From Macrostomum hystrix (lineage: Eukaryota; Animalia; Platyhelminthes): DNA of 64,000 nucleotides. Both the position numbers and the translations under genes were made by a program. Of the stretch, positions 29,540 to 62,481 are shown in pieces; positions within the stretch are counted from its first letter, which is position 1; the number at the start of each line of letters is the position of its first letter. Below the pieces are notes generated by a model. It saw only the letters and a list, made by a program, of their open reading frames with translations, had not been told where the DNA came from and ran no database searches. The stretch spans positions 27,156,001-27,220,000 of the forward strand of contig CATNEN010000038.1 of assembly GCA_950097015.1 (NCBI GenBank), read 5' to 3'.

Positions 29540-30319
29540 CTATAGTCGGGGTCCAAATAAGATTGAATGCTATCTTGCGAAGTGAATAAGCACTTGGCTA
29601 GCGCTTATTGCAAACTGAATAAATATAAGAGCGAGCCGCTATTTGTTTACCTTGGCAAGCTGTGCATGGGCTAATGAATTTGTGTGTGCTAAACTACAAG
29701 TCACCACCTGGGCAGGTGTGGAGTGTGTGAGCCATGCCCATGCGTTTTCGTTTGTTAGAATGTCCACTGAGCGGCAGAGAAAGGTAGTTCTAGTAAATAA
29801 ACGATCCTACACTTGTACGGTTTTTAGGGATGACACCTGCAAATAGCTGCGTAATTTGAATTGCTACAGGTAACATTTGCATGTCTGAACTGTCCAAAGA
29901 GCATCACGAAATGTATAAATATTATAATAGGCTTAGCTGAAGCGCAATCAGAAAGACTTTCACCTGATTAAAAAGTCTGAAACAGAACACTTTCCCAGCT
30001 GAAAACAGACTCAGGGCCATGTACAATTTTTCTGCGAGTATCAGTAACCTCTACCTGGTACAATACCTTTACACACAAAAGCTTTAAAAGTAAATGAAAT
30101 GCTAATTGGGCTATTTGTGTTACTTTGGCATTCGCCATAATTTAGGCTAGAAATTTGCATTATGGTGACGACATTGCATTCATTAAAGTACTCGCAAAAA
30201 GTCAAAGTTGTTCGCATACTTAATGAACAATTTAGCATGAAAGTAAAATGTCTGCTTTTAAGAAGTTAAGTACAAAACACTTTTGCGACACTGCCAGTCT
30301 TCTTAATCTTCTCTTTAAT

Positions 30320-33300: not shown

Positions 33301-34225
33301 TCACCTGTCTCTTCCATGTCTATTCTCTCACTTGTCTCTTCCATGTCTACTCTCTCACCTGTCTCTTCCATGTCTACTCTCTCACCTGTCTCTTCCATGT
33401 CTACTCTCTCACCTGTCTCTTCCATGTCTACTCTCTCACCTGTCTCTTCCATGTCTACTCTCTCACCTGTCTCTTCCACATCTACTCTCTCACCTGTCTC
33501 TTCCATGTCTTCTCTCTCACCTGTCTCTTCCATGTCTACTCTCTCACTTGTCTCTTCCATGTCTACTCTCTCACCTGTCTCTTCCATGTCTACTCTCTCA
33601 CCTGTCTCTTCCACATCTACTCTCTCACCTGTCTCTTCCATGTCTACTCTCTCATTTGTCTCTTCCATGTCTACTCTCTCACCTGTCTCTTCCATGTCTA
33701 CTCTCTCACCTGTCTCTTCCATGTCTACTCTCTCACCTGTCTCTTCCATGTCTACTCTCTCACCTGTCTCTTCCATGTCTACTCTCTCACCTGTCTCTTC
33801 CATGTCTACTCTCTCACCTGTCTCTTCCATGTCTATTCTCTCACTTGTCTCTTCCATGTCTACTCTCTCACCTGTCTCTTCCATGTCTACTCTCTCACCT
33901 GTCTCTTCCATGTCTATTCTCTCACCTGTCTCTTCCATGTCTACTCTCTCACCTGTCTCTTCCATGTCTACTCTCTCACCTGTCTCTTCCATGTCTACTC
34001 TCTCACTTGTCTCTTCCATGTCTACTCTCTCACTTGTCTCTTCCATGTCTACTCTCTCACCTGTCTCATCCATATCTACTCTCTCACCTGTCCTATCCAT
34101 ATCTACTCTCTCACCTGTCTCATCCATATCTACTCTCTCACCTGTCTCTTCCATGTCTACTCTCTCACCTGTCTCTTCCACATATACTCTCTCACCTGTC
34201 TCTTCCACATCTACTCTCTCACCTG
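30320..34225. repeat. Minisatellite, 27-bp unit CTACTCTCTCACCTGTCTCTTCCATGT, ~144 copies
   Basis: Direct inspection; source of the spurious 1300-aa ORFs. Confidence 0.97.
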
Positions 34226-36014
34226 GTTCAAAGTGAGAGTTGATAACAAATAAAAACAGAACACTCGACCTGATGTTGTGCGCATGGCATTTTGCATCGA
34301 GTAAAGTAAACAAAACTATAGTAAACAAAATAGCCTACTAAATTCAACTTTCCAATTCACAATTTATATTTTCGACTTGACAAACGCACACAAATCAAGA
34401 TCTAAATTTAAACAAGCAGAACTTGCTGGTGATTGAGCTAACATTGATAATAACTTTATTATCAATGGCGGGTCAGTTTCTGCGTTAATAATTTAGTTTT
34501 CAACTAAAACAATTGCCGCTTATAGATTATAAACAATTGAAATTCCTCAATTAAATTCCATGCAAATGGTTAATCACAGAACGGTTCACGAACAATTTGT
34601 TTAGTTTAATAAGTTGATTTAAATGAATACTGATTTAAATCATTAGATCGATCTTCGTATAAAACAGGATACAAAATTAACTTACAAAATGAAAATAGTA
34701 AATTTGAAAGTAGTTATTGGCATTTAACAGCGCTATTTTTATGTACATCACAGCCAAACTAAATGAGACATTTTTTACCTTGCTTGCTACTAAAACGCGT
34801 TAGTTAGTAGTAGAATATGCGCGTGAATAAATAAAAAACTCATTCGATAATTCAATACAATAAGCAATTAAGTGACACTAGAATACAATGGCATGATTTG
34901 ATCTATAAGACTCAATCAATATTGGAATTGTAGGTTAAACAAAAAATAAAACGTGGCATTGTGCTTATTGTAAAAACTGATTTAAATTTAGCACCATAAA
35001 AACATCGAGTATGGACTGTTGCGCACACCAGTGATGTAGTAGCAATTACGGTGGAAGAATGTCCACCTATTTGGAGACAGACTGGGGGCAGAGAAAGAGA
35101 GTAGATTAGGCTCGAGATTAGGTATGAGATAGGGGAAGATAAGGGTTGAAATGGTGTATAGAGTATATAGAACAGATATATATTTTTGGAATCAATCGGA
35201 AAACACAACATGATTTGGCAAACAAAAATATCCTTGAAGTTTGTGAACAAACTAAAACAAAAAACTTGTTTGAACAAGAAAAAATACGTTAAAGCCTCTT
35301 TGTTAAATAAACAGAAGAGTTTGATATGTACTTTAAGGCGCTGTGAACAGTTGAGCTAAGTCAGACAGATTTTAGCATTTAGTTATGGACGCAACAATTT
35401 CTTTGCTGTGATAATAATGCAGTAACGATATGGTAAGATGGATTTTATTTATAACAATATCACTAAGGTCAGTCTCAATTTTAGTCTATGGCCAAAACTC
35501 TATCCGAAAGTTTTGTTTGTGGCCTCAACTCTATCACCTTTGAAATGTATTCAATTAACATAATTAACATAAATTCAATTCTATGGTAAGAATATAATAC
35601 TAGAGAAGTTAGTCTATGGCCACACCTAAGACATCAAATAAAACAATAAACAATAACTCTATGGCAATAACTGTTAAAAATACTTATACATATCCGTCCT
35701 GTCTTAATACTTCATTGGTGACTATTTTAATGAGCACATCACCACTTATTGGCCAGATTAAGACAGGATTAAGCAGCTTCATCGGCCTGAAATCCCGGAT
35801 TGGATGCGCCCGCCTGACTCTGTCGCGGCGTGGCATACACAGCGGACATCTCTATGTCTCTCGGATCTGAAAAGAATTACCAAACAATTATTTTACTGCA
35901 CAATTATGCAATGCTTTAATGTTTTTAGCATGTATTAAAGTAGTAAAAACGTTTCGAGACGGTTAGCGGGATTGAGCACTTGCAGTAGTGTCAATTCATC
36001 AGGCCATGTCAGCC

Positions 36015-38193: not shown

Positions 38194-38265
38194 CTAGATT
38201 GTGCCGCATTGTGAGAACATGTTTAGTTAGTCAGGACCAAGTTAAACAGGTATGACGGATTAGTT

Positions 38266-39648
38266 GAGAACAGGTGTGACAATGAGCAGAGAACAGGTGT
38301 GACAATGAGCAGAGAACAGGTGTGACAATGAGCAGAGAACAGGTGTGACAATGAGCAGAGAACAGGTGTGACAATGAGCAGAGAACAGGTGCGACAATGA
38401 GCAGAGAACAGGTGCGACAATGAGCAGAGAACAGGTGTGATAATGAGCAAAGAACAGGTGTGACAATGAGCAGAGAACAGGTGTGACAGTGAGCAGAGAA
38501 CAGGTGTGACAATGAGCAGAGAACAGGTGTGACAGTGAGCAGAGAACAGGTGTGACAATGATGCAAAAAACAGGTGTGACAATGAGCAGAGAACAGGTGT
38601 GACAATGAGCAAAGAACAGGTGTGACAATGAGCAGAGAACGGGTGTGAAAATGAGCAGAGAACAGGTATGACAATGAGCAGAGAACAGGTGTGACAATGA
38701 GCAGAGAACAGGTGCGACAATGAGCAGAGAACAGGTGTGACAATGAGCAGAGAACAGGTGTGACAATGAGAAAAGAACAGGTGTGACAATGAGCAGAGAA
38801 CAGGTGTGACAGTGAGCAGAGAACAGGTGTGACAATGAGCAGAGAACAGGTGTGACAATGAGCAGAGAACAGGTGTGACAATAAGCAGAGAACAGGTGTG
38901 ACAATGAGCAGAGAACAGGTGCGACAATGAGCAGAGAACAGGTGTGACAATGAGCAGAGAACAGGTGTGACAATGAGCAAAGAACAGGTGTGACAATGAA
39001 CAGAGAACAGGTGTGACAATGAGCAGAGAACAGGTGCGACAATGAGCAGAGAACAGGTGTGACAATGAGCAGAGAACAGGTGTGACAATGAGCAAAGAAC
39101 AGGTGTGACAGTGAGCAGAGAACAGGTGTGACAGTGAGCAGAGAACAGGTGTGACAGTGAGCAGAGAACAGGTGTGACAATGAGCAGAGAACAGGTGTGA
39201 CAGTGAGCAGAGAACAGGTGTGACAGTGAGCAGAGAACAGGTGTGACAATGAGCAGAGAACAGGTGTGACAGTGAGCAGAGAACAGGTGTGACAATGAGC
39301 AGAGAACAGGTGTGACAATGAGCAAAGAACAGGTGTGACAATGAGCAGAGAACAGGTGTGACAGTGAGCAGAGAACAGGTGTGACAGTGAGCAGAGAACA
39401 GGTGTGACAGTGAGCAGAGAACAGGTGTGACAATGAGCAGAGAACAGGTGCGACAATGAGCAGAGAACAGGTGTGACAATGAGCAGAGAACAGGTGTGAC
39501 AATGAGCAAAGAACAGGTGTGACAATGAGCAGAGAACAGGTGTGACAGTGAGCAGAGAACAGGTGTGACAGTGAGCAGAGAACAGGTGTGACAATGAGCA
39601 GAGAACAGGTGTGACAATGAGCAGAGAACAGGTGTGACAATGAGCAGA
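38266..39648. repeat. Minisatellite, 23-bp unit GAGAACAGGTGTGACAATGAGCA, ~60 copies
   Basis: Direct inspection; ~5-copy paralog at 58703-58824. Confidence 0.95.
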
Positions 39649-40037
39649 GGTTTTGCATGTATAAAAAGTGCAAAAAAAAATTAGCAATTGCTGCCATTTG
39701 TGCAGGCAAAACTGCTGATGTGTGTATAAACTATTTTACATGCATGACACTTTAATAAGCGATTATTGCACCTATAAATCAAACGCTCGTAATGGTATCA
39801 ATATTTCTGCTAAAAATTGTACTATGAAGCATTGTTTCGTCCGTATTTTTTATCCATTAATTTAGTCTACAGGTAATGTCAACTTAAGCCTTATTCGTAT
39901 GAGTTTCCACTTTAAGGGGTCTATTACCCGACGCATTTCCGAAATAGCAGGTCATATGCAGACCCGATGCATTCGTCTACTTAGATATGAAAGCGGGGTC
40001 GGACATGATGCATTCTCGATTCTCGATCGACAGTGTA

Positions 40038-41264
40038 TTTTAGGGCTGGGTGCAGTATTGTAGGGCTGGGTGCAGTATTGTAGGGCTAGGTGCAGTATTG
40101 TAGGGCTGGGTGCAGTATTGTAGGGATGGGTGCAATATTGTAGGGATGGGTGCAGTATTGTAGGGCTGGGTGCAGTATTGTAGGGATGGGTGCAGTATTG
40201 TAGGGCTGGGTGCAGTATTGTAGGGATGGGTGCAGAATTGTAGGGATGGGTGCAGTATTGTAGGGCTGGGTGCAGCATTGTAGGGCTGGGTGCAGTATTG
40301 TAGGGCTGGGTGCAGTATTGTAGGGATGGGTGCAGTATTGTAGGGATGGGTGCAGTATTGTAGGGATGGGTGCAGTATTGTAGGGCTAGGTGCAGTATTG
40401 TAGGGCTGGGTGCAGTATTGTAGGGATGGGTGCAATATTGTAGGGATGGGTGCAGTATTGTAGGGCTGGGTGCAGTATTGTAGGGATGGGTGCAGTATTG
40501 TAGGGCTGGGTGCAGTATTGTAGGGATGGGTGCAGAATTGTAGGGATGGGTGCAGTATTGTAGGGCTGGGTGCAGTATTGTAGGGCTGGGTGCAGTATTG
40601 TAGGGCTGGGTGCAGTATTGTAGGGATGGGTGCAGTATTGTAGGGATGGGTGCAGTATTGTAGGGATGGGTGCAGTATTGTAGGGATGGGTGCAGCATTG
40701 TAGGGCTGGGTGCAGTATTGTAGGGCTGGGTGCAGTATTGTAGGGATGGGTGCAGTATTGTAGGGCTGGGTGCAGTATTGTAGGGCTGGGTGCAGTATTG
40801 TAGGGATGGGTGCAGTATTGTAGGGCTGGGTGCAGTATTGTAGGGCTAGGTGCAGTATTGTAGGGATGGGTGCAGCATTGTAGGGCTGGGTGCAGTATTG
40901 TAGGGCTGGGTGCAGTATTGTAGGGATGGGTGCAGCATTGTAGGGCTGGGTGCAGTATTGTAGGGCTGGGTGCAGTATTGTAGGGCTGGGTGCAGTATTG
41001 TAGGGCTAGGTGCAGTATTGTAGGGATGGGTGCAGCATTGTAGGGCTGGGTGCAGTATTGTAGGGCTGCGTGCAGTATTGTAGGGATGGGTGCAGTATTG
41101 TAGGGCTGGGTGCAGTATTGTAGGGATGGGTGCAGTATTGTAGGGCTGGGTGCAGTATTGTAGGGCTGGGTGCAGTATTGTAGGGATGGGTGCAGCATTG
41201 TAGGGCTGGGTGCAGTATTGTAGGGCTGGGTGCAGTATTGTAGGGATGGGTGCAGTATTGTAGG
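40038..41264. repeat. Minisatellite, 20-bp unit TAGGG(C/A)TGGGTGCAGTATTG, ~61 copies
   Basis: Direct inspection. Confidence 0.95.
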
Positions 41265-41861
41265 CTTGAGGGCACTATTGAAGGGTTTGACGCAGACAAA
41301 GGCTGAAATTTGGCAGTGAAAACAACGTTCCGACTTTGGCCCTGATTAGGCGTAAATCTATATATTCTGGGCCGGGCGAGACACCCACCTCAGCCCGCTC
41401 ACTTGGACCTGGCAGCCAGGTGTACATAGCCAGGTGTACATAGCCAGGTGTACATAGCCAGGTGTACATTCAGTGATACTCATGCTTCTGGTTAGAGTCT
41501 ATTTTTATATATTTATTAAGCAATACTTGAGAACAGTAATTAGAACAGTTTATGACGCATTTTTGCATGCTTGAATGGCAGTCAGTCTGGGTGCAAAAAG
41601 CAGAGAAAATTCAGACAGAATCGTCTAAGGAAACTGGACTTCTACGAGCTATGATATGATAAGAACATTTTTGGGACTGTCTGCCCAGCTACTGTAATAA
41701 ATTGGCTGAGGTGACAACCAGATAGACATATTTGAGTCTTGAACATATTCTGCATGAATAATTGATCAGCCACTGGTGAGAGCAAAAACTAATAAAATAA
41801 CAGTTTCTTTTGGTTATTTATTGATTATGAGAAGCTAATTCACAGGTTATGATATTCAAAT

Positions 41862-42104
41862 TCATCTACTCGAGCAGAATTGCAAAGCTATGCAAGAATT
41901 TCGAGCTCTAAAAGCACTCAAAAATGTGCAGTTGTGATGAATCTCTGGCTGATCACGAGAAAGATCGCCCACAGCAACAATCTCAATGTAGTCAGCGCGG
42001 CAGTCGCTCTCTGTGTCCTGCCCCTCCACAGCAGCACCAGCAGCAGCAGTCGCTGGTATGCTAACAATCAAGTAGCAGCACTCGGACTCGAAGCCGTTAG
42101 TTTT
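41862..42104 (-). CDS. Putative terminal cytoplasmic exon of the lectin-Ig receptor (two YxxPhi motifs), in frame but preceded by TAG
   Basis: TTTCAG|AAA ACT... gives KTNGFESECCYLIVSIP...ADYIEIV...SSR*; phase 0 matches the donor at 42517. Confidence 0.5.
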   Translation of the reverse strand, partial: KTNGFESECCYLIVSIPATAAAGAAVEGQDTESDCRADYIEIVAVGDLSRDQPEIHHNCTFLSAFRARNSCIALQFCSSR

Positions 42105-42171
42105 CTGAAATCAGAGCAGCCTTGAGCACTCATTCAGTTTCGGAAATAAAACGGAAACACTACTGACAAGT

Positions 42172-42429
42172 AGCATTGTAGCCAAGTAGCCATTGTAGCC
42201 AAGTAGCCATTGTAGCCAAGTAGCCATTGTAGCCAAGTAGCCATTGTAGCCAAGTAGCCATTGTAGCCAAGTAGCCATTGTAGCCAAGTAGCCATTGTAG
42301 CCAAGTAGCCATTGTAGCCAAGTAGCCATTGTAGCCAAGTAGCCACTGTAGCCAAGTAGCCACTGTAGCCAAGTAGCCACTGTAGCCAAGTAGCCACTGT
42401 AGCCAAGTAGCCATTGTTGCCAAGTGGCC
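42172..42429. repeat. Minisatellite, 17-bp unit CATTGTAGCCAAGTAGC
   Basis: Direct inspection. Confidence 0.95.
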
Positions 42430-42517
42430 ATCGAGATTAATGGATAAGCAACGTGGCATTTCTCGGACAGGACTGTCCCTGTTTGCTCGCTGAAGTCTAA
42501 GTGACTCGTTGACTCAC

Positions 42518-45500
42518 CTAATTAGCAGGATGGAACACCTCAGGTGACACTTTAGATTCCTCCTGAATGCCTGAGCTTAGGTTGAGCCCGGCTGCTGAAG
42601 GCTCAGTTGACGGCACTCGGAGCTGCAATGGAAAGGTTCAGAGCCGTCGGCTTCTGAAGGGCACGATCGCCACATTGTCCTGCACTGACCTTCGAGATGA
42701 GCAGAAAGCATGCAGCGCAGACGACTGACACAACAACGAAAACGATGGTGGCTGAGACAGCAATTGTTTTCGTTGTTGCAGTCGTGAAAGTCATGAGCCC
42801 AGCCCCAGGGCAGTCGAGTCGAGCCATGGTGTAAACAGGTGAGCCGAAAGTCATGTTCTCAGGGAGGTTCTGTGCCGCACTGCAGTTGACAAAGACTTCG
42901 CTCCTGCTCATGTCATGCTCAACACCGCTGTCGAGCGACCACGTGGTAAGGAGGCCCCTGTTGTCTGGCACCTGCAGTTTCATATAGTACAGTGTGTTGC
43001 AACCAAGTCTTTCAAGAATCATACAGAATGCAACTCACCTGTGAAAGCAGAGAGACATTTTCTCCTTTGAGTTCGCCAGCTTGAAAGTCGCACGTGTGCT
43101 CAGGCATTGGGTGAGAAGCCGATGATCTGAACTGTACCGTTATTCTTGCCATGCTTTTGCAGCTTTCCAGGAATTTTATCGATAGACTCGATGGCGGGTC
43201 TGGCGGAAATTTTGAGGTGCTTTCATAAATTGCTGCTCAAGTATTTGTTATGAGGAGCAAATACGAGTTATTAGAAAAATTCTGGATGCCCACTCACACA
43301 GCACGTTGACTGGGGTCTGCGTCTGCACAGAGCCAAGGCTGCAAGAGTAATTTCCTGAGTGCTCAGAAAGTGCTCGAGCCACTGCTGTCTTGTGATCTTC
43401 AATGCAGGTACCGTTCGGAAGGCAGAGCTGGAGCCCGCTTGAGTTTGAGCACAGCATTGAGCTTTTGCAGTGCAGCTCGCATCTCACATCGAAACTCGAG
43501 TTGACGGCCACAAACTGATCCGCGGAGGCCGCTGAAAAAATATTTTGACCAGCTTGGATGATAAACAGATAAACGAAAAGGGATCGAATGCAGTTTATGT
43601 GACTGAAGTCTCTGTGACGAGTTAATGGTACGGATGCACTCAAAGGCATTGGAATCTAGTATCTATTATCGTTGATGTGGAACGAGTTTATCAACGAGTT
43701 CATGAGTTCCATGAGGCATAGTTGATGGTCAAATTGGCTATTGGCGTTTCAATTGACTTGGCTTTTTGACAACATGCCCGTAGAGATTGTGTCAGTCGAG
43801 GTTTTTTTGCTGTGGTCATTGTGTCAGTTGATGTTTTGTGCTGTGGTCATTGTGTCAGTTGAGGTTTTGTGCTGTGGTCATTGTGTCAGTTGAGGTTTTG
43901 TGCTGTGGTCATTGTGTCAGTTGAGGTTTTGTGCTGTGGTCATTGTGTCAGTTGATGTTTTGTGCTGTGGTCATTGTGTCAGTTGAGGTTTTGTGCTGTG
44001 GTCATTGTGTCAGTTGAGGTTTTGTGCTGTGGTCATTGTCTCAGTTGATGTTTTGTGCGGTGGTCATTGTGTCAGTTGAGGTTTTGTGCTGTGGTCATTG
44101 TGTCAGTTGAGGTTTTGTGCTGTGGTCATTGTGTCAGTCGAGGTTTTGTGCGGTGGTCATTGTGTCAGTTGAGGTTTTGTGCTGTGGTCATTGTGTCAGT
44201 TGAGGTTTTGTTTTGCGCAAAAATGTCTCGCTTTCAGGCCCTTATAATTCTTTAAAAGTTATAAACAAAGTAGAAAATCTGCTCACAGAGCACGGCGACT
44301 GAGGTCTGCTTGCTGACAGAGCCAAGTCTGCAAGAGTACTTTCCAGAATGCTCAGGAAGTGCTCGAGCCACTGCAATCTTGTGATCTGCAATGCAGGTAC
44401 CGTTCGGAAGGCAGAGCTGGAGCCCGCTAGAGTTGAAGCACATCTGTGAGTTGTTGCAGTGCAGCTCGCAGCTCACAGAAAACCTCGACTGGAGGGCCAC
44501 GACCTGAACTACCGAGATCGCTGGAATATAAATTACCATTGAAATTTCAAGCTCATCTTGTGCACTTCCTGCTTAAGAAATTACTTTAAACTGAACTCAC
44601 TCAGTACGCTGACAGTGGATGTTTTTGCAACCGATCCGAATCTGCACCTGTAGTCACCTGAGTGCTTAGGCTGAGCACTGCCAATGTGCAGCTCATGGCC
44701 ATTTATGCAGCTGCCGTTGGGAGAGCACAGCTGCAGCTCGCTTGAGCTCGAGTTGAGATTTACTCCATCGCAGTGCAGCAAGCAGCTCACACTGAACTTT
44801 GAGCTCTGAGGCACCAGCTGAGGCGCTGAGGATTCTGGAGATTTACAAACCATCCAATCGACATTGCTAAATCAAGGAAATTTAGAATTTCCATTTCACA
44901 ACAAAAGGTCTATAGTAAAAGAGCCGAACTCACTCGGATGCACAGTCTGAAGCCTGAGATCTGCGAAGCTCATGAAGTCGTCAGGATAAGATGACCCAGT
45001 AATATCCCTTCGCAGCAGCAAGTGTCTCACCTGGAATTCAGATAAAATCTCAGTGGGATCCAGAACTCATCAGAGCACAACTCAAGGCACAGAGCAGGTC
45101 TCACCTCCGCTAAGCAGTTCACGGTGAAGATCTCACCAGCCTCGATATGCGCCTCATGCTTGCTCACCGTCAGGCCGCACCGTCTCCAGAGCTGCTGAGA
45201 CTCTCTGAACTGGCTGTTCATTTTTCTTGAGCTGCAGTGATCACCTGAGAACAGCTGTCTGCTGCTGCTCGATGTCCAGATCTCGATGTCTTTGGCTCTC
45301 GGGTAGACATGTGTAGCGCCATCTAAAAGTGAGTACTTTCGACTAAGCAGTGGAAGCTGATGTGCATGAAAAAATGGAGCAGTGACTCACCCTCTCTGCC
45401 CTTCACAGTAACTAACCCGATAAGCACAGGCTCATTCAGCATCACTGCGAACCAATGAAATCCTCCGTCTGCTTGGCTTCTGTCTTTGCTGTGGAAGAAT

Positions 45501-48052
45501 TCGTAGCTGGGGGTAGAATTCTTTACCGTCTTTTCCTCTTCAGTGGAGCTTCTGTTGCTGAAGCAAGACGTTACTCCGCCGATCGTTTCAAAGGACGACG
45601 ACTGCCACGAGTTGAGTACTTGGTTCCTGCGAATCGGCAACTCACAGGCTGCAGTTGCCATGGAAAATTGCAATTCAGAAAGTAACTCGAGCAATTCTCT
45701 ATTATTCCTTATTGTGTTTAAATTTGCTTTCGGCCTTTATACTTTAACCAATTTCACCAGGTTGTGCTTCTGCATTGTGCTATTTTTTACCGTTTGTCTA
45801 ATTTCTCTGAGCTACGATTCGAAGTGTAAAAATGTCTCGCTTTCAGGCCCTTATAATTCTTTAAAAGTTATAAACAAAGTAGAAAACCTGCTCACAGAGC
45901 ACGGTGACTGAGGTCTGCTTGCTGACAGAGCCAAGTCTGCAAGAGTACTTTCCAGAATGCTCAGGAAGTGCTCGAGCCACTGCAATCTTGTGATCTGCAA
46001 TGCAGGTACCGTTCGGAAGGCAGAGCTGGAGCCCGCTTGAGTTTGAGCACAGCATTGAGCTGTTGCAGTGCAGCTCGCATCTCACAGCGAAACTCGAGTT
46101 GACGGCCACAAACTGATCCGCGGAGACCGCTGAAAAAATATTTTGACTAGCTTGTATGATAAACAGATAAACAAATAGCGATCGAATGCATTTTATGTGA
46201 CTGAAGTCTCTGTGACGAGGTAAAGGCAGGATATGAATCTAGTATTGATTTTCGTTGATGAGGAGCTGATTTCTCAACGAGTTCATGAATTCCATTAATC
46301 AGAATGGCCGTTCAATTGGCTATTGGCGTTTTAATTGGGTTTGGGTTTTTGCTACCCAGCCCTGTCTGTTTTGCTGTCTGCTTACCTTGTATTCCTCACA
46401 GTCAGTTCTGACTTTGCTCTAATTCTATCTAGTTCTCTACATTTTCCGCCTTCTGATTGGTCCGCCTCTCACTTTCTAGCCTCCTCTCTTACCCTCAGTC
46501 GCGCACTCTTTTGTTATCGCCAAGCCAACCCCCTCCAGTCTGTCCAACTTAACCATGCGTTATACGAGTCGGATATAGCCAAGGGCACAGCGCCCTGTCA
46601 CTTTCGCTTCTCTTCTCTCCATTGGCTACCCGCATGGCAGCTAAAAAATTATTACTTCTCCTAATTTCTCGACACTTCTTCCAAGCAATTCGGAAATAAC
46701 TCGAGCAATTCTCTATTATTCCTCATTGTGTTTAAATTTGCTTTCGGCCTTCACACTTTAATCAATTTCCCCAGACTAACTTCTGCATTGTGCTATTTTT
46801 TACTGTTTGTCTCATTTGTCCGAGCTACGATATGAAGCGCAAAAATGTCCCGCTTTCAGGCCCTTATAATTCTTTAAAAGTTATAAACAAAGTAGAAAAT
46901 CTGCTCAACTTGTGCACTTCCTGCTTGAGAAATTACTTTAAACTGAACTCACTCAGTACGCTGACAGTGGATGTTTTTGCAACCGATCCGAATCTGCACC
47001 TGTAGTCACCTGAGTGCTTAGGCTGAGCACTGCCAATGTGCAGCTCATGGCCATTTATGCAGCTGCCGTTGGGAGAGCACAGTTGCAGCTCGCTTGAGCT
47101 CGAGTTGAGTTTTACTCCATCGCAGTGCAGCAAGCAGCTCACACTGAACTTTGAGCTCTGAGGCACCAGCTGAGGCGCTGAGGATTCTGGAGATTTACAA
47201 ACCATCCAATCGACATTGCTAAATCAAGGAAATTTAGAATTTCCATTTCACAACAAAAGGTCTATAGTAAAAGAGCCGAACTCACTCGGATGCACAGTCT
47301 GAAGCCTGAGATCTGCGAAGCTCATGAAGTCGTCAGGATAAGATGACCCAGTAATATCCCTTCGCAGCAGCAAGTGTCTCACCTGGAATTCAGATAAAAT
47401 CTCAGTGGGATCCAGAACTCATCAGAGCACAACTCAAGGCACAGAGCAGGTCTCACCTCCGCTAAGCAGTTCACGGTGAAGATCTCACCAGCCTCGATAT
47501 GCGCCTCATGCTTGCTCACCGTCAGGCCGCACCGTCTCCAGAGCTGCTGAGACTCTCTGAACTGGCTGTTCATTTTTCTTGAGCTGCAGTGATCACCTGA
47601 GAACAGCTGTCTGCTGCTGCTCGATGTCCAGATCTCGATGTCTTTGGCTCTCGGGTAGACATGTGTAGCGCCATCTAAAAGTGAGTACTTTCGACTAAGC
47701 AGTGGAAGCTGATGTGCATGAAAAAATGGAGCAGTGACTCACCCTCTCTGCCCTTCACAGTAACTAACCCGATAAGCACAGGCTCATTCAGCATCACTGC
47801 GAACCAATGAAATCCTCCGTCTGCTTGGCTTCTGTCTTTGCTGTGGAAGAACGCGTAGCTGGGGGTAGATTTCCATTTAGTGTCAATCGCTGTCTCTTCG
47901 TAGTAGCCTCTGATGCCGAAGCAAGTCCTTACATATTTGATCGACCCAAACCACGACGACTGCCAGGAGTTAAGCCCATTGTACTTGCGAATCGGCAACT
48001 CACAGGCTGCAGTTGCCATGGAAACTTGCAGTGCCAGGATTAGCAGAAGCAT
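42518..48052 (-). CDS. Type I membrane protein with two F-type-lectin/discoidin-like domains and 5-6 Ig-like domains (SP-FTLD-Ig-Ig-FTLD-Ig-Ig-Ig-Ig-like-TM-tail), ~971 aa
   Basis: Exons (minus, GT-AG, phase-consistent, total 2916 nt): 48052-47743, 47674-47457, 47382-47286, 47186-46953, 46129-45896, 45648-45391, 45322-45105, 45030-44934, 44834-44601, 44520-44287, 43531-43298, 43199-43039, 42971-42690 (TM IAVSATIVFVVVSVVCAACFLLI), 42622-42518. Signal peptide MLLLILALQVSMATAA. Lectin motifs WQSS...AID...FFHS...WFAVML...V.V.GRED...R..DIEIW. Five 234-nt phase-1 Ig exons with F.V.C...HSG.Y.C. Confidence 0.72.
43786..44210. repeat. Minisatellite, 31-bp unit ATTGTGTCAGTTGAGGTTTTGTGCTGTGGTC
   Basis: Direct inspection. 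Confidence 0.95.
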
Positions 48053-48607: not shown

Positions 48608-51600
48608 GTGTGGAGGGAGGAAGCTCGCACCGGCGGGACACAACGCCTGTGAGGTATGAGTCAGTCAAGGCCTACGGGCTAAGGTCTGCGATGCCTCACA
48701 CCTGCAGTCGCTTTTTGAGCAGGCTTGGCAGGAAGGAGCCCTGTGCCTTCGGGTACAGAGATCCTTCCACGCTGTCCCGTCAGCTGACCCATGGGTACAC
48801 GTCCCGCGAGTGTTCAAGGCTGACCCTAAGGCAGCCGGACAGAATGGGCAACAGCGCTGGATGACCCATCCAGGGCCTCTGGCCAAACTGGGTACCTCTA
48901 GCCCTGGCTGGAGGGAAAGGTGTCACCCTTTGACCTTAACAGGGTATGCGGCCAGTCTGCAGCGTTCGTGCACCTGTGCGTGATCAGGTACCTCTGGCTA
49001 CGGCTCTGAGGGACAGGTGTAACCCTTCGACCTCAACAGGGTACGCAGCCAGTCTGCGGGTCTGGCACTGCTCTAGGTATCCTCTTATGCCTAAGGTCTC
49101 ACCGCGCTGAGGGGCTGAAAGGTCCGGGGAGTTTATCCGGCCGTTGGCGGTTTTTATTATTATTTTTCTTTTCTCTCTTTCCAGCGACCTATGGAGTCCC
49201 ACTATAGCTCCAGCACGTCCCAGGACCCTGCTGAAACGCTGACCCCGGCCGGCAACGCAGATCCTCAGGACCAGCGTCAGGGCGACACCGGTTCCACCGG
49301 CGCTCAAAATCCATCCTGCTCCTCCGCCACTCAGGAAAACACCAGAGCGGCTGGATCAAAGAGCAAACGCTCCCCTGCCACGCAAGCCCGAAGCTTCGCC
49401 CGCCTCCAGGAATCCCGGCGGCGAAAACAGGAAGTACCGCCTCCGAGGAGGGGACTGGCAACTCTGCGAACATCGCGGAGGAAACGGCACCCAACAAGGA
49501 GGCGGACTCCTCACGCCGTCCGGGAAACCCGGAAGCGCGGAAAAGTGCCGCCCAGGCCTCTGGGAAGTCCGGTTCCTCTCGCGGCGAAACCTCTCACAGC
49601 CATCCAGAAACTCCGACGACTGCTGGGGGGCCCCTTGCGGGAGGCGCCGGCCAAACCACAAAGCCAAAGCACATTTACGCTGCTATGGCAAAGAGGCAGC
49701 CGGCCTTGGTTATCCGAGTCCAGGAGACGCCCCTCTCGACAGCGCAACTCGACCAGATCTGGCGCAGATTGGACTCCCATCTGGTCAAACTGGCACTGAG
49801 CGGCACTGTGCTGCATGTCCTGAAGACTGACATCCAGGACCAAGCCCTCATTGTCCAGCCTGCCGACAACCAGTCCGGACAGCAACTCCTCGAGATGCTG
49901 AAATCCTTCGACTGGGGCACGGCAATGGGCAACCTGTTTATCTACAGGGAAGACGAGCGCCCCCAGACACACCGTCATCGTGTTTGGATCCCAGCTCGCA
50001 GCGCCATCACCAACGCCGGAGAACTGCGCCGCCTGCTGTTAGCAATCCACCCGGATCTGCCAGCAAACGGTGTCGTGGTTCATGAAACCATCACCAGATC
50101 TGGTGGAGACGGTTTCACGGCCATCCTAGGACTGTCGGACAGCTGGATGCTCCGCTGCCCAAACATGTCCTACATCAGTGCAGGCCTCACTCGAATGCAG
50201 ATTTTCAGCTTCAAGTCCGACGCCACTCGCCCGCCGCCCCCGGAAAAGCGGAAACGGACGAACCAGAGCTCTGCCGGGTCCCCGCGCCCTGGAACACAGA
50301 CTCCTTGTCGTCACGACCACTCCGAGGATGCGGACCCTATTAGGGGCAAAGCCGCGCGAGCCGCAACAACAGGCGGACGTGGTAAGGGCCGGAAACCCGC
50401 CCGCAACACCATCCGTACTGGCCTGACTCAGCGCGCCAGACAGCTGTCGGACCCCAACAGTGGACGCCACCACAGCACCACCCGGCCCAATGTCTCATCG
50501 GAACCCCCGACGGAAAACCGGGCTGAGGATACGGACGCCGCTGTTGCGGCAGCCCCGGCCTCAGCTCTGGACCCGATTCAGGAGGAACCGATGGAGCTCG
50601 GGCAAAACACCGGCGAGGACGAGGAATCGCTCCTGAACAACTCGCCGTAGGCCAGCAGGTAGCCGCACGGACCACCCCTCCTGGGGTGAGCTTCCTGCAG
50701 CTGAACCTGCACCACTGCATCGCGGCCTCGACCAACCTGGCGCGTGTGGTGGACTTCGAAAAACCGGGCATCATCCTCCTCCAAGAGCCCTGGACGAAGA
50801 AAGGTAAGATTCCGAACATTCCTGCAGGTTTTGACTGTTTTTTCATGCCCCAAAACCCCAGGGCTGCTGTGTTCGCGACTACCGATCTCAAAGCTTGGTA
50901 TAGACCAGACCTCTCTGACAAAGACCTCTGTGTCATCCAAACCAACCACATTCTCCCGAACCGCACCGTCATCATCGCCTCTATCTACATTATTGTCAAC
51001 TTGGGGGTCATTGTCAACTGGGGGATCATTGTCAACTGAGAGATCATTGTCAACTGGGGGATCTTTGTAGCTGTAAAAAAGCTGAAAATTATACAGCTGC
51101 TAAAAAGCATTTACTGGACAAGAATAAAAAATACTACACGACTAAGTTGGTTTCATGATTTCAAATGATTTCCACTCGAAATTATTAACCTGGAAAGTCA
51201 CCTATAGAAAATTTTATCTTAACTCTGACTATGTCAGTACACTATATGGCTGTCGTCGGTGTCCCAATAGATTTGAGCACAGCTTATCGAGTCGGATTCA
51301 ATTGAAAATCAATCTAGAAATGATTTCCTACACGACTGAGTTGGTTTCATGATTTCAAATGATTTCCACTCGAACTTATTAACCTGGAAAGTCACCTAGA
51401 AAAAGGCGCGGGTTGGGCGCAGTGTGTCCCACCGGGGGAATACTGACTGGACGGCCTTTGCGGAATCCGTGAAGCGCCAGACCAACCAGTTAGAATCCGT
51501 TGTTCCTGCCACCTGTCAAGAAGTGGACGATCTAGCCGATCTGCTCAGCACGACCATCTTGACAGCTCATGAAACCTCTTGCCCCCTTAAAGCCTACAAA

Positions 51601-52600
51601 AGGCAAAAAATCCGCTCCCTGGTGGAACCCAGCGCTTGGAACCCTCCGGCGCAAGGCCAAATCCCTCCAGCGGATTGCGCGGAAAAGCAAGGACCCAGCT
51701 GACCTGACCGCCTACCAGAATGCGATTCGTGATTTTAAGCGTGACACCAGGAAAGCGAAGTTCGAAAAGTGGCGCCAATACTGCTCCGAGCTGGAGGGCG
51801 CCCGCCCAACCTCTCGCGTTGTAAAAGCGCTTACTCTTGACAAAATGTCGAAGCTCTCAGTGATCAAAAGACCAGATGGCCGGCTTGCTGAGAATCCTGG
51901 CGAATCGCTGGACATAATGCTCGCCAGCGCTTTCCCCCGGACCGCGCCGCTTCAGGACCCGCCGGACCACACTCCGGGTGGACACATCCTTGCGACCACC
52001 ATTATCACTAGAGAACGGACAGCTCGCACTGCTAATTCCTTCTCGCCTTTTAAGTCGCCTGGACCTGACAACATTTACCCCGCCTTCCTACACGAAGCGG
52101 TGAAAAATGACAGGTTTCTCGGCCTCCTTTGCAACCTGTTCAAGGCCTGTATCACCCTCGGGTACGTACCCAGGTCTTGGCAGGAAAGCCACTATCGTCT
52201 TCATCCCCAAGCCTGGGAAGGGAGACTACCACTCCGCCAAAGCCTTCCGCCCCATCAGCTTAACATCTTTCTTTCTTAAGCTGCTTGAAAGGCTTGTTCT
52301 TTGGCGCCTCCTTCACGCTGAGCTGAGGAACTCCCCGCTCTCCGCCAATCAGCACGCTTTTCGATCCGGACGTTCCATCGAAAGTGCTCTGCACGCCATT
52401 GTCGACAAGCTGGAGCGCGCCGTGCTTGGCACCGGTTTCGCTCTCTCGCTTTTCCTCGACATTGATGGTGCCTTCGACAATGTGCTTTTCGGAGCCTTTA
52501 GGCGAGCCCTGGAACGCCGGGCTACGCACGAGCACCTCACCCGCACCTATATGATCTCTCACCGAACTGCCACCTCGCACCTGCTTGGCCACTCCCGCTG
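48608..52600 (+). mobile_element. Degraded non-LTR retrotransposon (LOA/R1/I-group-like LINE): 5'UTR, ORF1 (~49191-50650, frameshifted), ORF2 APE endonuclease start (50686) and RT (to ~52600); 3' truncated
   Basis: GC-rich block. FLQLNLHHCIAAS...IILLQEPW (APE). KSPGPDNI, IVFIPKPGKGDY, FRPISLTSFFLKLLERL, QHAFRSGRS, LFLDIDGAFDNV (RT). Frameshifts near 51600 and 52190. Confidence 0.9.
50990..51400. other. AT-rich foreign insertion replacing part of the LINE endonuclease, with 18-bp tandem repeats (CATTGTCAACTGGGGGAT) and a ~63-bp direct repeat (51138/51331)
   Basis: Abrupt composition change and loss of the ORF2 frame. Confidence 0.6.
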
Positions 52601-53000
52601 TAATTATTCTGGTGAATCGGTCGGAGTTAGCAAGTATTTATTAAAGCTAAAATGATGTTGAGCATGATAAGCATACCATAAATGTATTAGTCATGACGGA
52701 AATTCGTTAACATATGCTTGCTAAGCTGATAAATAATAAACTGATTCGACTGGGTTTAACAGGTAAATTTGTTTATTTACACTAAACTATCTTATTTTAC
52801 AGTTCAGATTCGTGTGAGCTTTCTAAATTAGGCACGCTAAACAAATCACTTACAAGTTCGATTCTTCACAAAACTCATCTCGCTGGTTAGATACTGAGGA
52901 CCTGTAGTCGGGGCACTAGCCATCACTCTGGCTGATACGCTGATGAAATACTCTAACCCCGACTCGGCATATTGGCACTGATAATTGTATTTGTCTGTGA
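52601..53000 (-). pseudogene. Truncated duplicate of RPTP1 exon 1 3' part and intron 1 (matches ~28735-29130)
   Basis: Near-identical sequence; ITDKYNYQCQYAESGLEYFISVSARVMASAPTTGPQYL(T/A)SEMSFVKNRT. Confidence 0.9.
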
Positions 53001-53001
53001 T

Positions 53002-55165
53002 GGGTCCATGAGACTTGCCCGCAGGCGAACTGCCCGCCGAGATTTGCCCGCAGGAGATTTGCCCGTCGAGATTTGCCCGCCGAGGTTTGCCCGCAGAGAT
53101 TTGCCCGCAGTGCATTCTGCCCGCAGGAGATTTGCCCGTCGAGATTTGCCCATCGAGATTTGCCCGTCGAGATTTGCCCGTCGAGATTTGCCCGTCGAGA
53201 TTTGCCTGTCGAGATTTTCCCGCAGAGATTTTCCCGTCGAGATTTTCCCGTCGAGATTTGCCCGCAGAGATTTGCCCGCAGAGATTTTCCCGCAATGCAG
53301 TTTTAATCTTGCAAAAATCGACTTATACTTATCGAAATTATTTACCTGCCAGATTTCAACCGTGTGAATCTGAAACTCTTACTGCCGCAAATGCATAAGA
53401 TATTTCTTTGGCATTTCGCAGACACCTCAAATTTCCTTTCTGCTAAATTACTGTAGCCTGTTCTATAATCTTTTGTAGCAGCAATTTTTTGCTGGTGCCT
53501 GGTGGTAGGGATGGTAAAATCCCGGCTAGTTTCCAATCCCAGGATTGTCGGGTTCGGGACATTCCTGTCCAACTCCCATAAAATCCCCAGCATTTTCAGT
53601 CCCAGCAAATCCCGAAAAATTGAAATCCCGCTGAATGGTGGGCAATTTTAAGTCCTGAGATATGCTGCTACAAACACCTGGAATTCCAGGTGTTTGCTCT
53701 CAAATCCCGGTCCCGGTATTGGAATCTCTAGCTGGTGGAGCGCTGTCTGTTTCAAATTCACATGTCAGCCGCCTGGATTTTATCACCTCGATCTGCTCAA
53801 CCACCGAACGACAAATCCAGTAAATAAGCCATGGAGTCCTATATGGTGCATGTCGGGGACCCCACGACATTTTATAATCTGGCCCTTACATAGAGTATGA
53901 GTATGCAGAGCATTTTCTAAAAACATCGCCTTGTGCATGTGGCGACGGGCAGCTGGCTTATCTATATAACAAATTTAATGAAATTTAAAGACCTGCTTAT
54001 TAACTCCTCGCTAAAGATCCAGAAAGCAGTGTAAACAAAGTCTGATGTGATTCTTTCTCGCTAATTCTATCCTGGACCCCTATATCTCAATTCCCAGTCT
54101 TCGATAAAATGTCCATAAAATCTGTCTGGATTTCATTCTCTCTGGGTCTGGGTCTGGGTCTGGGTCTCTCATTCTCTCTTCTCTTTCTGATTGGCTGCAG
54201 GCACCCCACCCCTTTAGCCTCCTTCTTGTCTTGCGTGCCCCTTATTCCTTTGATCGCGCCTCCTAACCCAACCCCTCTCTTTGCCCACCCCTCCTTTCTC
54301 TCAACCCCCTGTTATCTCCTATAATATATAAATACACTGCCCTTCCTTACTGCTTAGTGTATTCAACTTTAGTCTGGTCAAGTTAGACTGCGACAACTCT
54401 ACATATATAAAGTGAATTTCAAGACAACGTTAATAACAAGCAGACCACATGGAAGCAGCTCCTCCCATCGCTGTGCGCTTTAGTGCAACAATTCGTGGGA
54501 AGCGCAAAGCAGCCTGCGAAGGCTACTACTTTACACTTGAAAGAACTAGCCTGGTCGACGAAGAGGTGTCATTTTGGCATTGTGAAGAACGGCGCTTGGG
54601 ATTCATGTCCTGCTCGAATCCACATCCGGAATGGCTTTAAAGTGCGACAGCTGAATGACCACAATCACGGACCTGACGGCTCTCGATTCCAAGTTCTTGA
54701 GGCTCTTCGGGAGATTAAATCGGATGCCAGGAACACCGTGAATTCGACGGCAAATATCGTCATGGAACACACAAATGGGCTGTCTGAGTGTGCAGGCATA
54801 GCCCTTCCATCTCAAAGCGCATTAAAGCGGCAAGTTCAAGATGTTCGTCAAACGCACCAAGTTCTTCCAGTACAGCCGCTCAACCGAGCCGAGCTCATTA
54901 TACCTGAAGAATTTCAATTCAACAACGGAGCACTGTTTCTGCTGCATGACTCCGGACAGGACAACAATCGAATTTTAATCTTCGGTAGCGAGGATAACAT
55001 TCAAGCCCTGCAATTGGCGACAGATTTCTTCTCGGACGGCACATTCGATGCCTCGCCGCCACTGTTCGCTCAACTGGTGACAGTGCATGCCGAACTTCAA
55101 GGCTTCATAAGACCACTCATCTACGCATTGCTACCCAACAAGACCGAAGCAACGTACTCTACTCT
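53002..55165 (+). mobile_element. Mutator/MULE DNA transposon, left part: terminal 14-bp subrepeats plus FLYWCH-MULE transposase fragment (54449-55165, frameshift ~54600)
   Basis: GAGATTTGCCCG(T/C) repeats at 53005-53295. FLYWCH motif GYYF...FWHCEE...CPARI...HNH. MULE DDE core FFSDGTFDASPPLFAQLVTVH...PLIYALLPNKTEATY. Truncated into the 27-bp array. Confidence 0.85.
53506..53730. mobile_element. hAT-like MITE nested in the MULE
   Basis: Ends TAGGGATG.../...AATCTCTA, internal AATCCC(G) repeats, 8-bp near-TSD CCTGGTGG/GCTGGTGG. Confidence 0.5.
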
Positions 55166-58100
55166 ACATGTCTACTCTCTCACCTGTCTCTTCCATGTCT
55201 ACTCTCTCACCTGTCTCTTCCATGTCTACTCTCTCACCTGTCTCTTCCAAATCTACTCTCTTACCTGTCTCTTCCACATCTACTCTCCCACCTGTCTCTT
55301 CCACATCTACTCTCTCACCTGTCTCTTCCACATCTACTCTCTCACCTGTCTCTTCCACATCTACTCTCTCACCTGTCTCTTCCACATCTACTCTTTCACC
55401 TGTCTCTTCCACATCTACTCTCTCACCTGTCTCTTCCACATCTACTCTCCCACCTGTCTCTTCCACATCTACTCTCCCACCTGTCTCTTCCAAATCTACT
55501 CTCTCACCTGTCTCTTCAATGTCTACTCTCTCACCTGTCTCTTCCAAATCTACTCTCTCACCTGTCTCTTCAATGTCTACTCTCTCACCTGTCTCTTCCA
55601 CATCTACTCTCTCACCTGTCTCTTCCAAATCTACTCTCTCACCTGTCTCTTCCAAATCTACTCTCTCACCTGTCTCTTCCACATCTACTCTTTCACCTGT
55701 CTCTTCCACATCTACTCTCTCACCTGTCTCTTCCACATCTACTCTTTCACCTGTCTCTTCCACATTTACTCTCTCACCTGTCTCTTCCACATCTGCTCTC
55801 TCACCTGTCTCTTCCATATCTACTCTCTCACCCGTCTCTTCCACATCTGCTCTCTCACCTGTCTCTTCCAAATCTTCTCTCTCACTTGTCTCTTCCATGT
55901 CTACTCTCTCACTTGTCTCTTCCATGTCTACTCTCTCACCTGTCTCTTCCACATATACTCTCTCACCTGTCTCTTCCACATCTACTCTCTCACCTGGTTC
56001 AAAGTGAGAGTTGATAACAAATAAAAACAGAACACTCGACCTGATGTTGTGCGCATGGCATTTTGCATCGAGTAAAGTAAACAAAACTATAGTAAACAAA
56101 ATAGCCTACTAAATTCAACTTTCCAATTCACAATTTATATTTTCGACTTGACAAACGCACACAAATCAAGATCTAAATTTAAACAAGCAGAACTTGCTGG
56201 TGATTGAGCTAACATTGATAATAACTTTATTATCAATGGCGGGTCAGTTCCTGCGTTAATAATTTAGTTTTCAACTAAAACAATTGCCGCTTATAGATTA
56301 TAAACAATTGAAATTCCTCAATTAAATTCCATGCAAATGGCAAAAAACACAGAACGGTTCACGAACAATTTGTTTAGTTTAATAAGCTGATTTAAATGAA
56401 TACAGATTTAAATCATTAGATCGATCTTCGTATAAAACAGGATACAAAATTAACTTACAAAATGAAAATAGTAAATTTGAAAGTAGTTATTGGCATTTAA
56501 CAGCGCTATTTTTATGTACATCACAGCCAAACTAAATGAGACATTTTTTACCTTGCTTGCTACTAAAACGCGTTAGTTAGTAGTAGAATATGCGCGTGAA
56601 TAAATAAAAAAACTCATTCGATAATTCAATACAATAAGCAATTAAGTGACACTAGAATACAATGGCATGATTTGATCTATAAGACTCAATCAATATTGGA
56701 ATTGTAGGTTAAACAAAAAATGAAACGTGGCATTGTGCTTATTGTAAAAACTGATTTAAATTTAGCACCATAAAAACATCGAGCATGGACTGTTGCGCAC
56801 ACCTAGTGATGTAGTAGCAATTACGGTGGAAGAATGTCCACTTATTTGGAGACAGACTGGGGGCAGAGAAAGAGAGTAGATTAGGCTCGAGATTAGGTAT
56901 GAGATAGGGGAAGATAAGGGTTGAAATGGTGTATAGAGTATATAGAACAGATATATATTTTTGGAATCAATCGGAAAACACAACATGATTTGGCAAACAA
57001 AAATATCCTTGAAGTTTGTGAACAAACTAAAACAAAAAACTTGTTTGAACAAGAAAAAATACGTTAAAGCCTCTTTGTTAAATAAACAGAAGAGTTTGAT
57101 ATGTACTTTAAGGCGCTGTGAACAGTTGAGCTAAGTCAGACAGATTTTAGCATTTAGTTATGGACGCAACGATTTCTTTGCTGTGATAATAATGCAGTAA
57201 CGATATGGTAAAATGGATTTTATTTATAACAATATCACCAAGGTCAGTCTCAATTTTAGTCTATGGCCAAAACTCTATCCGAAAGTTTTGTTTGTGGCCT
57301 CAACTCTATCACCTTTGAAATGTATTCAATTAACATAATTAACATAAATTCAATTCTATGGTAAGAATATAATACTAGAGAAGTTAGTCTATGGCCACAC
57401 CTAAGACATCAAATAAAACAATAAACAATAACTCTATGGCAATAACTGTTAAAAATACTTATACATATCCGTCCTGTCTTAATACTTCATTGGTGACTAT
57501 TTTAATGAGCACATCACCACTTATTGGCCAGATTAAGACAGGATTAAGCAGCTTCATCGGCCTGAAATCCCGGATTGGATGCGCCCGCCTGACTCTGTCG
57601 CGGCGTGGCATACACAGCGGACATCTCTATGTCTCTCGGATCTGAAAAGAATTACCAAACAATTATTTTACTGCACAATTATGCAATGCTTTAATGTTTT
57701 TAGCATGTATTAAAGTAGTAAAAACGTTTCGAGACGGTTAGCGGGATTGAGCACTTGCAGTAGTGTCAATTCATCAGGCCATGTCAGCCTAGCCATTAGC
57801 CTCATCACTCAGTATCTATGCTAGCCATTAGCCTCATCACTCAGTATCTATGCTATCCATTAGCCTCATCACTCAGTATCTATGCTATCCATTAGCCTCA
57901 TCACTCAGTATCTATGCTAGCCGTTAGCCTCATCACTCAGTATCTATGCTAGCCATTAGCCTCATCACTCAGTATCTATGCTATCCATTAGCCTCATCAC
58001 TCAGTATCTATGCTAGCCATTAGCCTCATCACTCAGTCTCTATGCTAGCCATTAGCCTCATCACTCAGTATCTATGCTAGCCATTAGCCTCATCACTCAG

Positions 58101-62370: not shown

Positions 62371-62481
62371 CTGGTCATTTATTTAGTGAAAGCACAGCAA
62401 ACTTTAAACACAAACCAGTTGGCATTGTTGTTAATCTACATGTATTTCTTTAATGAAAAAATCATTTAATGAAAAAATGAA

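Follow-up and report, generated by a model that had tools for sequence, protein, structure and literature searches.

The window analysed here is a stretch of 64,000 nt from the flatworm Macrostomum hystrix (contig CATNEN010000038.1, C38:27156001-27220000 of the 220-Mb assembly in which all genome searches were made). Its minus strand carries, from 48052 to 41862, a receptor gene that was rebuilt as 15 exons by splice-site and reading-frame analysis, and whose predicted product joins lectin-like head domains to immunoglobulin (Ig) domains and a transmembrane anchor. The model is built on genomic sequence; phases were calculated from exon lengths, and the exons were translated, searched and folded one by one. 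The exons, in the order in which they are read, are the following.

47743-48052, minus strand: exon 1, with the start codon, the signal peptide MLLLILALQVSMATAA and the first part of head 1; GGTGAGT donor
47457-47674, minus strand: exon 2, the middle of head 1 (DGATHVYPR..DIEIWTS..SGDHCSS..RRCGLT..GEIFTVNCLAE); TTTTAG acceptor
47286-47382, minus strand: exon 3, the final strands of head 1 (VRHLLLRRD..FMSFADLRLQTVHP)
46953-47186, minus strand: exon 4, Ig domain of type A, 234 nt, phase 1-1
45896-46129, minus strand: exon 5, Ig domain of type B, 234 nt, phase 1-1, the exon used for folding
45391-45648, minus strand: exon 6, the first part of head 2; its acceptor ctgcag/CC lies within a relic of signal-peptide coding sequence
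45105-45322, minus strand: exon 7, the middle of head 2, with the same sequence as exon 2
44934-45030, minus strand: exon 8, the end of head 2, with the same sequence as exon 3
44601-44834, minus strand: exon 9, Ig domain of type A, one amino acid different from exon 4
44287-44520, minus strand: exon 10, Ig domain of type B
43298-43531, minus strand: exon 11, Ig domain of type B
43039-43232, minus strand: exon 12, the first half of the membrane-proximal domain (..ITVQFRSSASHPMPEHTC..), homologous to P0003 and P0007 of M. lignano
42690-42971, minus strand: exon 13, the remaining half of the membrane-proximal domain (..NCSAAQNLPENM..DCPG), followed by the transmembrane helix IAVSATIVFVVVSVVCAACFLLI
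42539-42622, minus strand: exon 14, the juxtamembrane cytoplasmic segment, with an inferred donor
41862-42104, minus strand: exon 15, the cytoplasmic tail with two tyrosine motifs and the stop codon

All 14 introns, which are 65-823 nt long, have a GT donor and an AG acceptor, with GTGAGT or GTGAGC at 10 of the 14 donors. The phases of the 15 exons agree with one another, no exon contains an in-frame stop, and the summed exons come to 3171 nt, or 1056 codons. Intron 1 must be removed, because read-through meets a TAG at 47677-47675. The junctions of exon 1 with exon 2 and of exon 2 with exon 3 are mirrored in the M. lignano protein models P0007 and P0002, the first of which, as predicted, crosses them as 'KGREYGKSF' and 'NCTQDVRYLLLRRD'. 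The junction of exon 5 with exon 6, from Ig to head, is present with the same acceptor in paralogue L009, and the same exon set is found again at more than 20 paralogous loci of the M. hystrix genome. The gene at 41862-48052 is confirmed as real, far beyond chance. The weakest junction of the model is the exon 14 donor, GAG/GTGTTC, beyond which read-through would meet a TAG, in AATTAG, after about 20 nt.

An earlier reading of the letters alone, the sequence-only reading, had proposed 14 phase-consistent exons at this locus. Consistent phases and GT-AG introns were found throughout, with 15 exons in place of 14, and the difference probably sits in the tail, at the uncertain donor of exon 14. 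The order of domains proposed there is that of the rebuilt gene: signal peptide, then a lectin-like head and two Ig domains, then a second lectin-like head and three Ig domains, then the membrane-proximal domain, the transmembrane helix and the tail. A type I membrane protein that combines a lectin fold with Ig domains is likewise supported. Each head is spread over three exons, the membrane-proximal domain over two (the second of which also encodes the transmembrane helix) and the tail over two. Every Ig exon is 234 nt long with phase 1-1, and the three-exon head forms an in-frame cassette of 573 nt, again with phase 1-1. The gene is therefore assembled from shuffle-ready modules.

The gene also contains a tandem duplication.

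44583-48030, minus strand: internal tandem duplication with a period of 2352 nt; unit A (head plus Ig-A) at 48030-46935, unit B at 45672-44583
47850-47980, minus strand: the patch of head 1 with the variable loop; its identity with the corresponding patch of head 2 (about 45500-45625) is about 65%

Next to the loop patch the two copies of the repeat agree at 100% over 900 nt, in exons and introns alike, and the repeat is therefore very recent. On its 5' side the loop patch is flanked by a stretch that is 94% identical. Within exon 1 the head segments run WQSS, variable loop, FFHS, GFHWFAV and VTVKGRE, and the exon ends in phase 1.

What kind of domain is the head? Its structure was predicted with AlphaFold2 on the M. 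lignano homologue P0009 (residues 25-203), from an alignment, A3, of M. lignano proteins and individually aligned exon pieces. Most of the model has high pLDDT, with means of 67-98 over blocks of 10 residues and the lowest values at the variable loop. A Foldseek search with it returned CBM32, galactose oxidase domain 1 and F-type lectins at E 1e-5 to 1e-4, and the nearest named ESM Atlas clusters carry PF00754 and PF22633 (score 0.96). The homologue is predicted to form both the jellyroll beta-sandwich of F-type lectins and, more broadly, the galactose-binding domain-like fold, an eight-stranded jellyroll with binding loops at one end. The sandwich that the sequence-only reading had expected was obtained in this form, on P0009 and not on the window's own head. 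An alignment of all fragments headed by P0013 (A2) was discarded, having misplaced exons 2 and 3 onto an Ig domain. The head is a case of a domain so divergent that profile searches miss it and structure prediction recovers it.

The sequence tests gave a different answer. F-type lectin domains (FTLDs) are defined by a fucose motif, HX24RXDX4(R/K), and a cation motif, h2DGx (PMC5712786). Both heads of the window read H-X31-R-E-D-X7-R, the D codon of RED in head 1 being split over intron 1. Spacings of X31 and X7 stand against X24 and X4, and the CC pair is absent. The motif Asp is not conserved in the M. lignano relatives, which read REY, SEV or RAD at this place; the His and both Arg are largely conserved across the receptor family. 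As for the cation motif, head 1 has 'AID' without the Gly, within the most variable loop, and 'AID' occurs neither in head 2 nor in the 22 paralogues compared. The string WQSS...AID...H-X31-R-E-D-X7-R, which had been taken for a spaced variant of the F-type lectin motif, is literally present in head 1 and is not that motif. The calcium motif (QSS...AID) claimed along with it falls for lack of the Gly, its restriction to head 1 and its position in the variable loop.

Profile methods agree with the motifs. Pfam searches of the separate head exons of the window returned no family at E<=1, and neither a profile of exon 1 (24 exon-1 pieces) nor one of the full domain matched a lectin among PDB sequences at E<=10. 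The M. lignano homologues have sub-threshold matches to PF00754 (F5_F8_type_C, E 0.008-0.44), at the same place in four homologues. Comparison of the receptor family with canonical FTLDs of the same genome by hhalign gave a probability of 2.5%, which is no evidence of homology; the non-significant alignment sets GRE-R on NRqDC-R and the second Arg on eRL, with both Arg in register. Identity as a canonical fucolectin was rejected, the motif, profile and PDB sequence tests having all failed, and membership of the F-type lectins cannot be claimed from sequence motifs given the spacing, the variable Asp, the absent CC pair and the lack of any Pfam or PDB match.

The canonical FTLDs of M. hystrix serve as a control. 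At least 131 canonical PF22633 hits are present in the genome, none of them at the loci of the receptor family. This very large expansion lies on C1, C3, C7, C2, C39 and C38, and many of the copies stand in tandem arrays (for example C1:8.455-8.498 Mb, C3:4.453-4.462 Mb and C1:6.621-6.637 Mb). The seven copies inspected are uninterrupted reading frames (for example L025:1423-1845 and L030:1405-1875) of the form QSS..AIDGN..C(S/T)HT..WW..NRQDCCxERL, with H-X24-26-RQDCCxER. One copy matches FBP32 at E 4e-23 and AAA at 1e-14, and the two copies tested in Pfam pass thresholds, with PF22633 at E 1e-14. Since canonical domains pass the same tests, the failure of the receptor heads is informative. 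We read the head as a very divergent derivative of the F-type lectin or galactose-binding-like fold, which by the family's own definition is not an F-type lectin. The QSS strand and a basic set of His, Arg and Arg are common to the head and the F-type lectins.

The stalk is more readily recognised. Exon 5, aligned with 30 paralogous exons, was modelled by AlphaFold2 with a pLDDT of 84.5, and its top Foldseek matches in the PDB are C2-type Ig domains, namely FGFR1 D1, the IZUMO1 Ig domain, FGFR2 D1, IL-18Ra and NCAM (E 2e-4 to 1e-3). It was folded alone because a joint alignment of the Ig and membrane-proximal domains (A4) had misplaced exons 12 and 13; A4 was discarded. The B- and F-strand cysteines (C17 and C63) are invariant among the Ig exons and the Y-x-C motif is present, so that exon 5 of the window has the Ig beta-sandwich of C2/I type with its cysteines in the B and F strands. 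In Pfam the separate Ig exons score 15-17 bits with Ig_2 (E 0.007-0.03), below the gathering cut-off of 27. The membrane-proximal domain (exons 12 and 13) is conserved in M. lignano. Here the P0009 model has low confidence and the ESM Atlas gave no lead, and the label 'Ig-like' given to this domain could not be confirmed.

Exon 13 holds the 23-residue hydrophobic helix taken as the transmembrane segment. The tail encoded by exon 15 contains CCYLIV and ADYIEIV, 28 residues apart. In paralogues the distal motif reads TDYIEIV or TEYIEIV, and M. lignano tails have SYLSV together with TVYLEIV, TEYLDIV or TEYTEIV. The motifs YLxV and (T/A)xYxEI are conserved across paralogues and species; they fit YxxPhi, and most members, the M. 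lignano tails among them, also fit TxYxxI (ITSM-like). At 41862-41955 the window has lost the stop codon of its relatives: paralogues end right after YIEIVAVGD or YIEIVAVS, and the window runs on for about 33 codons.

The gene belongs to a family. The head exons of the genome number at least 51 and form clusters on C38, C8, C5 and C39; of the close type there are also about 15 transmembrane exons (85-93% identity) and 18 tail exons. These numbers differ enough that several genes must have more than one head. A profile search of 1.84 billion representative proteins gave only 14 hits, one of them a spurious repeat protein; 7 of the 8 looked up are from M. lignano and the eighth is from a JGI metagenome contig. 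A human or contaminant origin of the gene was rejected, its relatives being flatworm sequences throughout. On these searches the receptors are a multigene family found so far only in Macrostomum. The paralogue search thus had a positive outcome, and the description 'possibly unique' was too strong, since the gene is one of a family that numbers at least 51 head exons here and has relatives in M. lignano.

The M. lignano homologues (UniRef A0A1I8JJS2, A0A1I8H6B9, A0A1I8GJD6 and A0A1I8JC46; NCBI PAA53557.1 and PAA49974.1) share the head, the Ig and membrane-proximal domains, the transmembrane helix and the tail motifs, and range from a lone head to head, Ig and transmembrane helix. They have one head per listed model (two in tandem in fragment P0011), against two heads in the M. 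hystrix gene. Their sequences are already public, under automatic or 'hypothetical' names such as 'Ig-like', 'Sushi', 'CUB' and 'Fibrinogen C-terminal domain-containing', and the architecture carries no functional family name among its database relatives. We found no publication that deals with lectin-Ig receptors of Macrostomum or mentions the gene identifiers of M. lignano. The M. lignano models P0003 and P0015-P0018 fuse head exon 1 straight to an Ig exon, skipping exons 2 and 3. This skip of 315 nt is phase-compatible and could be alternative splicing that yields a truncated head, or a model error.

Identity among close paralogues is 54-73% for head exon 1, about 82-90% for exon 2 and 85-93% for the transmembrane exon. 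Within exon 1 the entropy of the loop from WQSS to FFHS is 0.91 bits, against 0.41 in the framework. Among the sequences compared, then, the heads diverge most, especially in the loop patch between WQSS and FFHS, and the transmembrane helix and tail are conserved.

How does this receptor compare with known systems? F-type lectins (AAA 1k12, FBP32 3cqo, lectinolysin and S. pneumoniae SpX/CBM47) resemble its head in a QSS-type motif in the first strand, in a hydrophobic core 'W(W/F)xVxL ... VxVxxR', in a basic His/Arg/Arg set roughly in place and in the occurrence of domains in tandem in one chain; the variable loops of the head lie where FTLDs have their CDR-like loops. They differ from it in the lack of detectable sequence homology, in the X24/X4 spacing against X31/X7, and in their vicinal Cys and calcium motif, which the head lacks. 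The head is also spread over three exons, in contrast to the uninterrupted frames of the seven canonical FTLDs examined, and is partnered by Ig. Two reviews list CTLD, HTLD, pentraxin, CCP, TM and FA58C as partners of FTLDs, and Ig is not on either list (PMC5712786, PMC12221842). The sequence-only reading had called an FTLD-Ig receptor a different combination, and by these lists it is one.

With the CBM32 and discoidin (F5/8 type C) families, including discoidin-domain and neuropilin-type receptors, the receptor gives no significant profile match, and it has no kinase, CUB or MAM partners. The QSS motif is not known to characterise these families. The molluscan FREPs, CREPs and GREPs (VIgLs) are, like the receptor, Ig plus lectin-type proteins of an expanded and diversified invertebrate gene family. 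They are secreted, with N-terminal Ig and a C-terminal fibrinogen, C-type lectin or galectin domain, whereas the receptor begins with its lectin-fold domain, alternates it with Ig, uses another lectin fold and ends in a transmembrane anchor and a signalling-type tail. Somatic diversification, unevidenced in the receptor, is a further difference, and the gene does not fall within the VIgLs. Siglecs and other ITIM/ITSM receptors have a membrane-distal head of sugar-binding type, a stalk of C2 Ig domains, a single transmembrane helix and two cytoplasmic tyrosine motifs about 25-28 residues apart. The receptor is like them in each of these features, as a functional analogy only, and its distal motif reads TxYxE(I/V) in paralogues and in M. 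lignano. It differs in having a jellyroll head in place of a V-set Ig domain, in the absence of homology and in the window's -2 residues, C and A.

Taken as a whole, the locus is best, and rather probably, explained as an intact gene whose product is a type I membrane glycoprotein, with divergent jellyroll heads on C2 Ig stalks, a membrane-proximal domain, a transmembrane helix and a tyrosine tail. The heads would bind an external ligand through variable loops around the partly conserved basic His/Arg/Arg site. That ligand would most simply be a glycan, a guess from the structural neighbours, with fucose as one possibility only. Occupancy might be relayed when the tail tyrosines become phosphorylated and SH2 proteins dock on them, in the manner of ITIM/ITSM receptors, or else by YxxPhi-mediated endocytosis. 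In its working logic of lectin head, Ig stalk and tandem tyrosine motifs such a protein would resemble the Siglecs by analogy, being unrelated to them. The lineage appears to have remodelled an F-lectin-type jellyroll past sequence recognition, set it on Ig stalks with a membrane anchor and conserved tyrosine motifs, and multiplied it into dozens of heads, which differ most in their loops. A more ambitious version, in which F-lectin-derived heads with hypervariable loops under diversifying selection and inhibitory ITIM/ITSM-like tails form an independently evolved, flatworm-specific, Siglec-like set for self/non-self or mate and sperm recognition, seems doubtful to us.

Several points weigh against this account. 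The fold of the head is taken from a homologue about 31-35% identical to the window head exons (A3), and no sequence method, whether Pfam, PDB profiles or hhalign, links the head to lectins. The galactose-binding-like fold also serves in binding protein, lipid and collagen, and glycan binding is therefore not implied by it. Compared with the ITIM/ITSM patterns (S/I/V/L)xYxx(I/V/L) and TxYxx(V/I), the tyrosine motifs of the window have C and A in place of the canonical -2 residue, with a fitting +3 residue, and the exon 5-6 and exon 14-15 junctions were deduced from genomic sequence. For the loop dN/dS comes to about 1.2, and for the framework to about 0.8. These values indicate fast evolution. 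They are no more than suggestive of positive selection and fall short of proof, since the loop cannot be aligned with certainty and dS is confounded by gene conversion; conversion of the framework sequence would suffice as an alternative.

Do the heads bind protein instead? The product could be a cell-cell or gamete recognition or adhesion molecule that evolves fast through sexual or cell-surface conflict, a reading we hold possible at a low level. Among the galactose-binding-like neighbours APC10, IFT25 and the SUN2-KASH complex have non-glycan binding, IZUMO1, NCAM and nectin-like adhesion molecules are among the best matches of the Ig fold, and the family is restricted to the genus and fast-evolving even in its framework. 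The nearest neighbours of the head are, however, carbohydrate-binding modules. A genuine F-type lectin fused to Ig, binding fucose with calcium-stabilised loops in immune or allorecognition, is unlikely. F-type lectins are the nearest solved structures, QSS stands in the first strand of both the heads and the canonical FTLDs, whose huge expansion could have been the source of the domain, and the His and both Arg are largely kept, in the case of the Arg with the register of the non-significant hhalign alignment. All this has to be set against the unmet HX24RXDX4(R/K) motif (PMC5712786), with X31/X7, no CC and an Asp replaced in M. lignano, against the lack of h2DGx where 'AID' occurs in one head only and inside a variable loop, and against Pfam and PDB searches that were blank for the heads and gave E 1e-14 (PF22633) and 4e-23 (FBP32) for canonical FTLDs.

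Or has the model been over-joined, so that units A and B are two genes, a gene and a relic, or an unexpressed recent duplicate? Exon 6 does retain a signal-peptide relic including an ATG, the 2352-nt repeat has its 900 nt of full identity, the join of the two units is known from the genome alone and the M. lignano gene models are heterogeneous, some skipping exons. Unit B, however, has no hydrophobic signal-peptide core and unit A no transmembrane helix, all 15 of 15 exons are open with strong splice sites, the Ig-to-head junction recurs with the same acceptor in paralogues, and two heads in tandem are found again in M. lignano P0011. We regard over-joining as the least likely of these alternatives. 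Little is known of the receptors that flatworms use for recognition at the cell surface. Should the receptor, as a membrane glycoprotein with divergent jellyroll heads and a tyrosine tail, prove to bind a ligand and to signal, it would be a new architecture among invertebrate lectin-Ig recognition molecules and would offer a tractable Macrostomum receptor family for immunity or mating-related recognition. RNA interference is usable in Macrostomum.

Two further repeats lie within introns of the gene.

43710-44273, unstranded: 31-nt minisatellite within intron 10
42123-42482, unstranded: 17-nt minisatellite within intron 14

The window as a whole is unusually rich in long minisatellites (30248-34328, 38223-41299, 8303-9498, 12370-14541, 55164-56099 and 61008-63973), and these arrays give long spurious open reading frames (ORFs) in several frames. 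A reverse-transcriptase fragment (RVT_1, E 5e-12) at 52107-52655 on the plus strand adjoins GC-rich ORFs upstream, at 51569-52279 and 49191-50650, which have no Pfam match; the region is probably a remnant of a non-LTR retrotransposon just upstream of the receptor gene start. The minus-strand ORFs 28976-29539 and 52846-53295 have a nearly identical C-terminal segment (..ITDKYNYQCQYAESGLEYFISVSARVMASAPTTGPQYL.SEMSFVKNRTCK). The former also encodes a signal peptide and a Thr-rich mucin-like stretch, and the pair may represent an exon that belongs to another surface protein and was duplicated.

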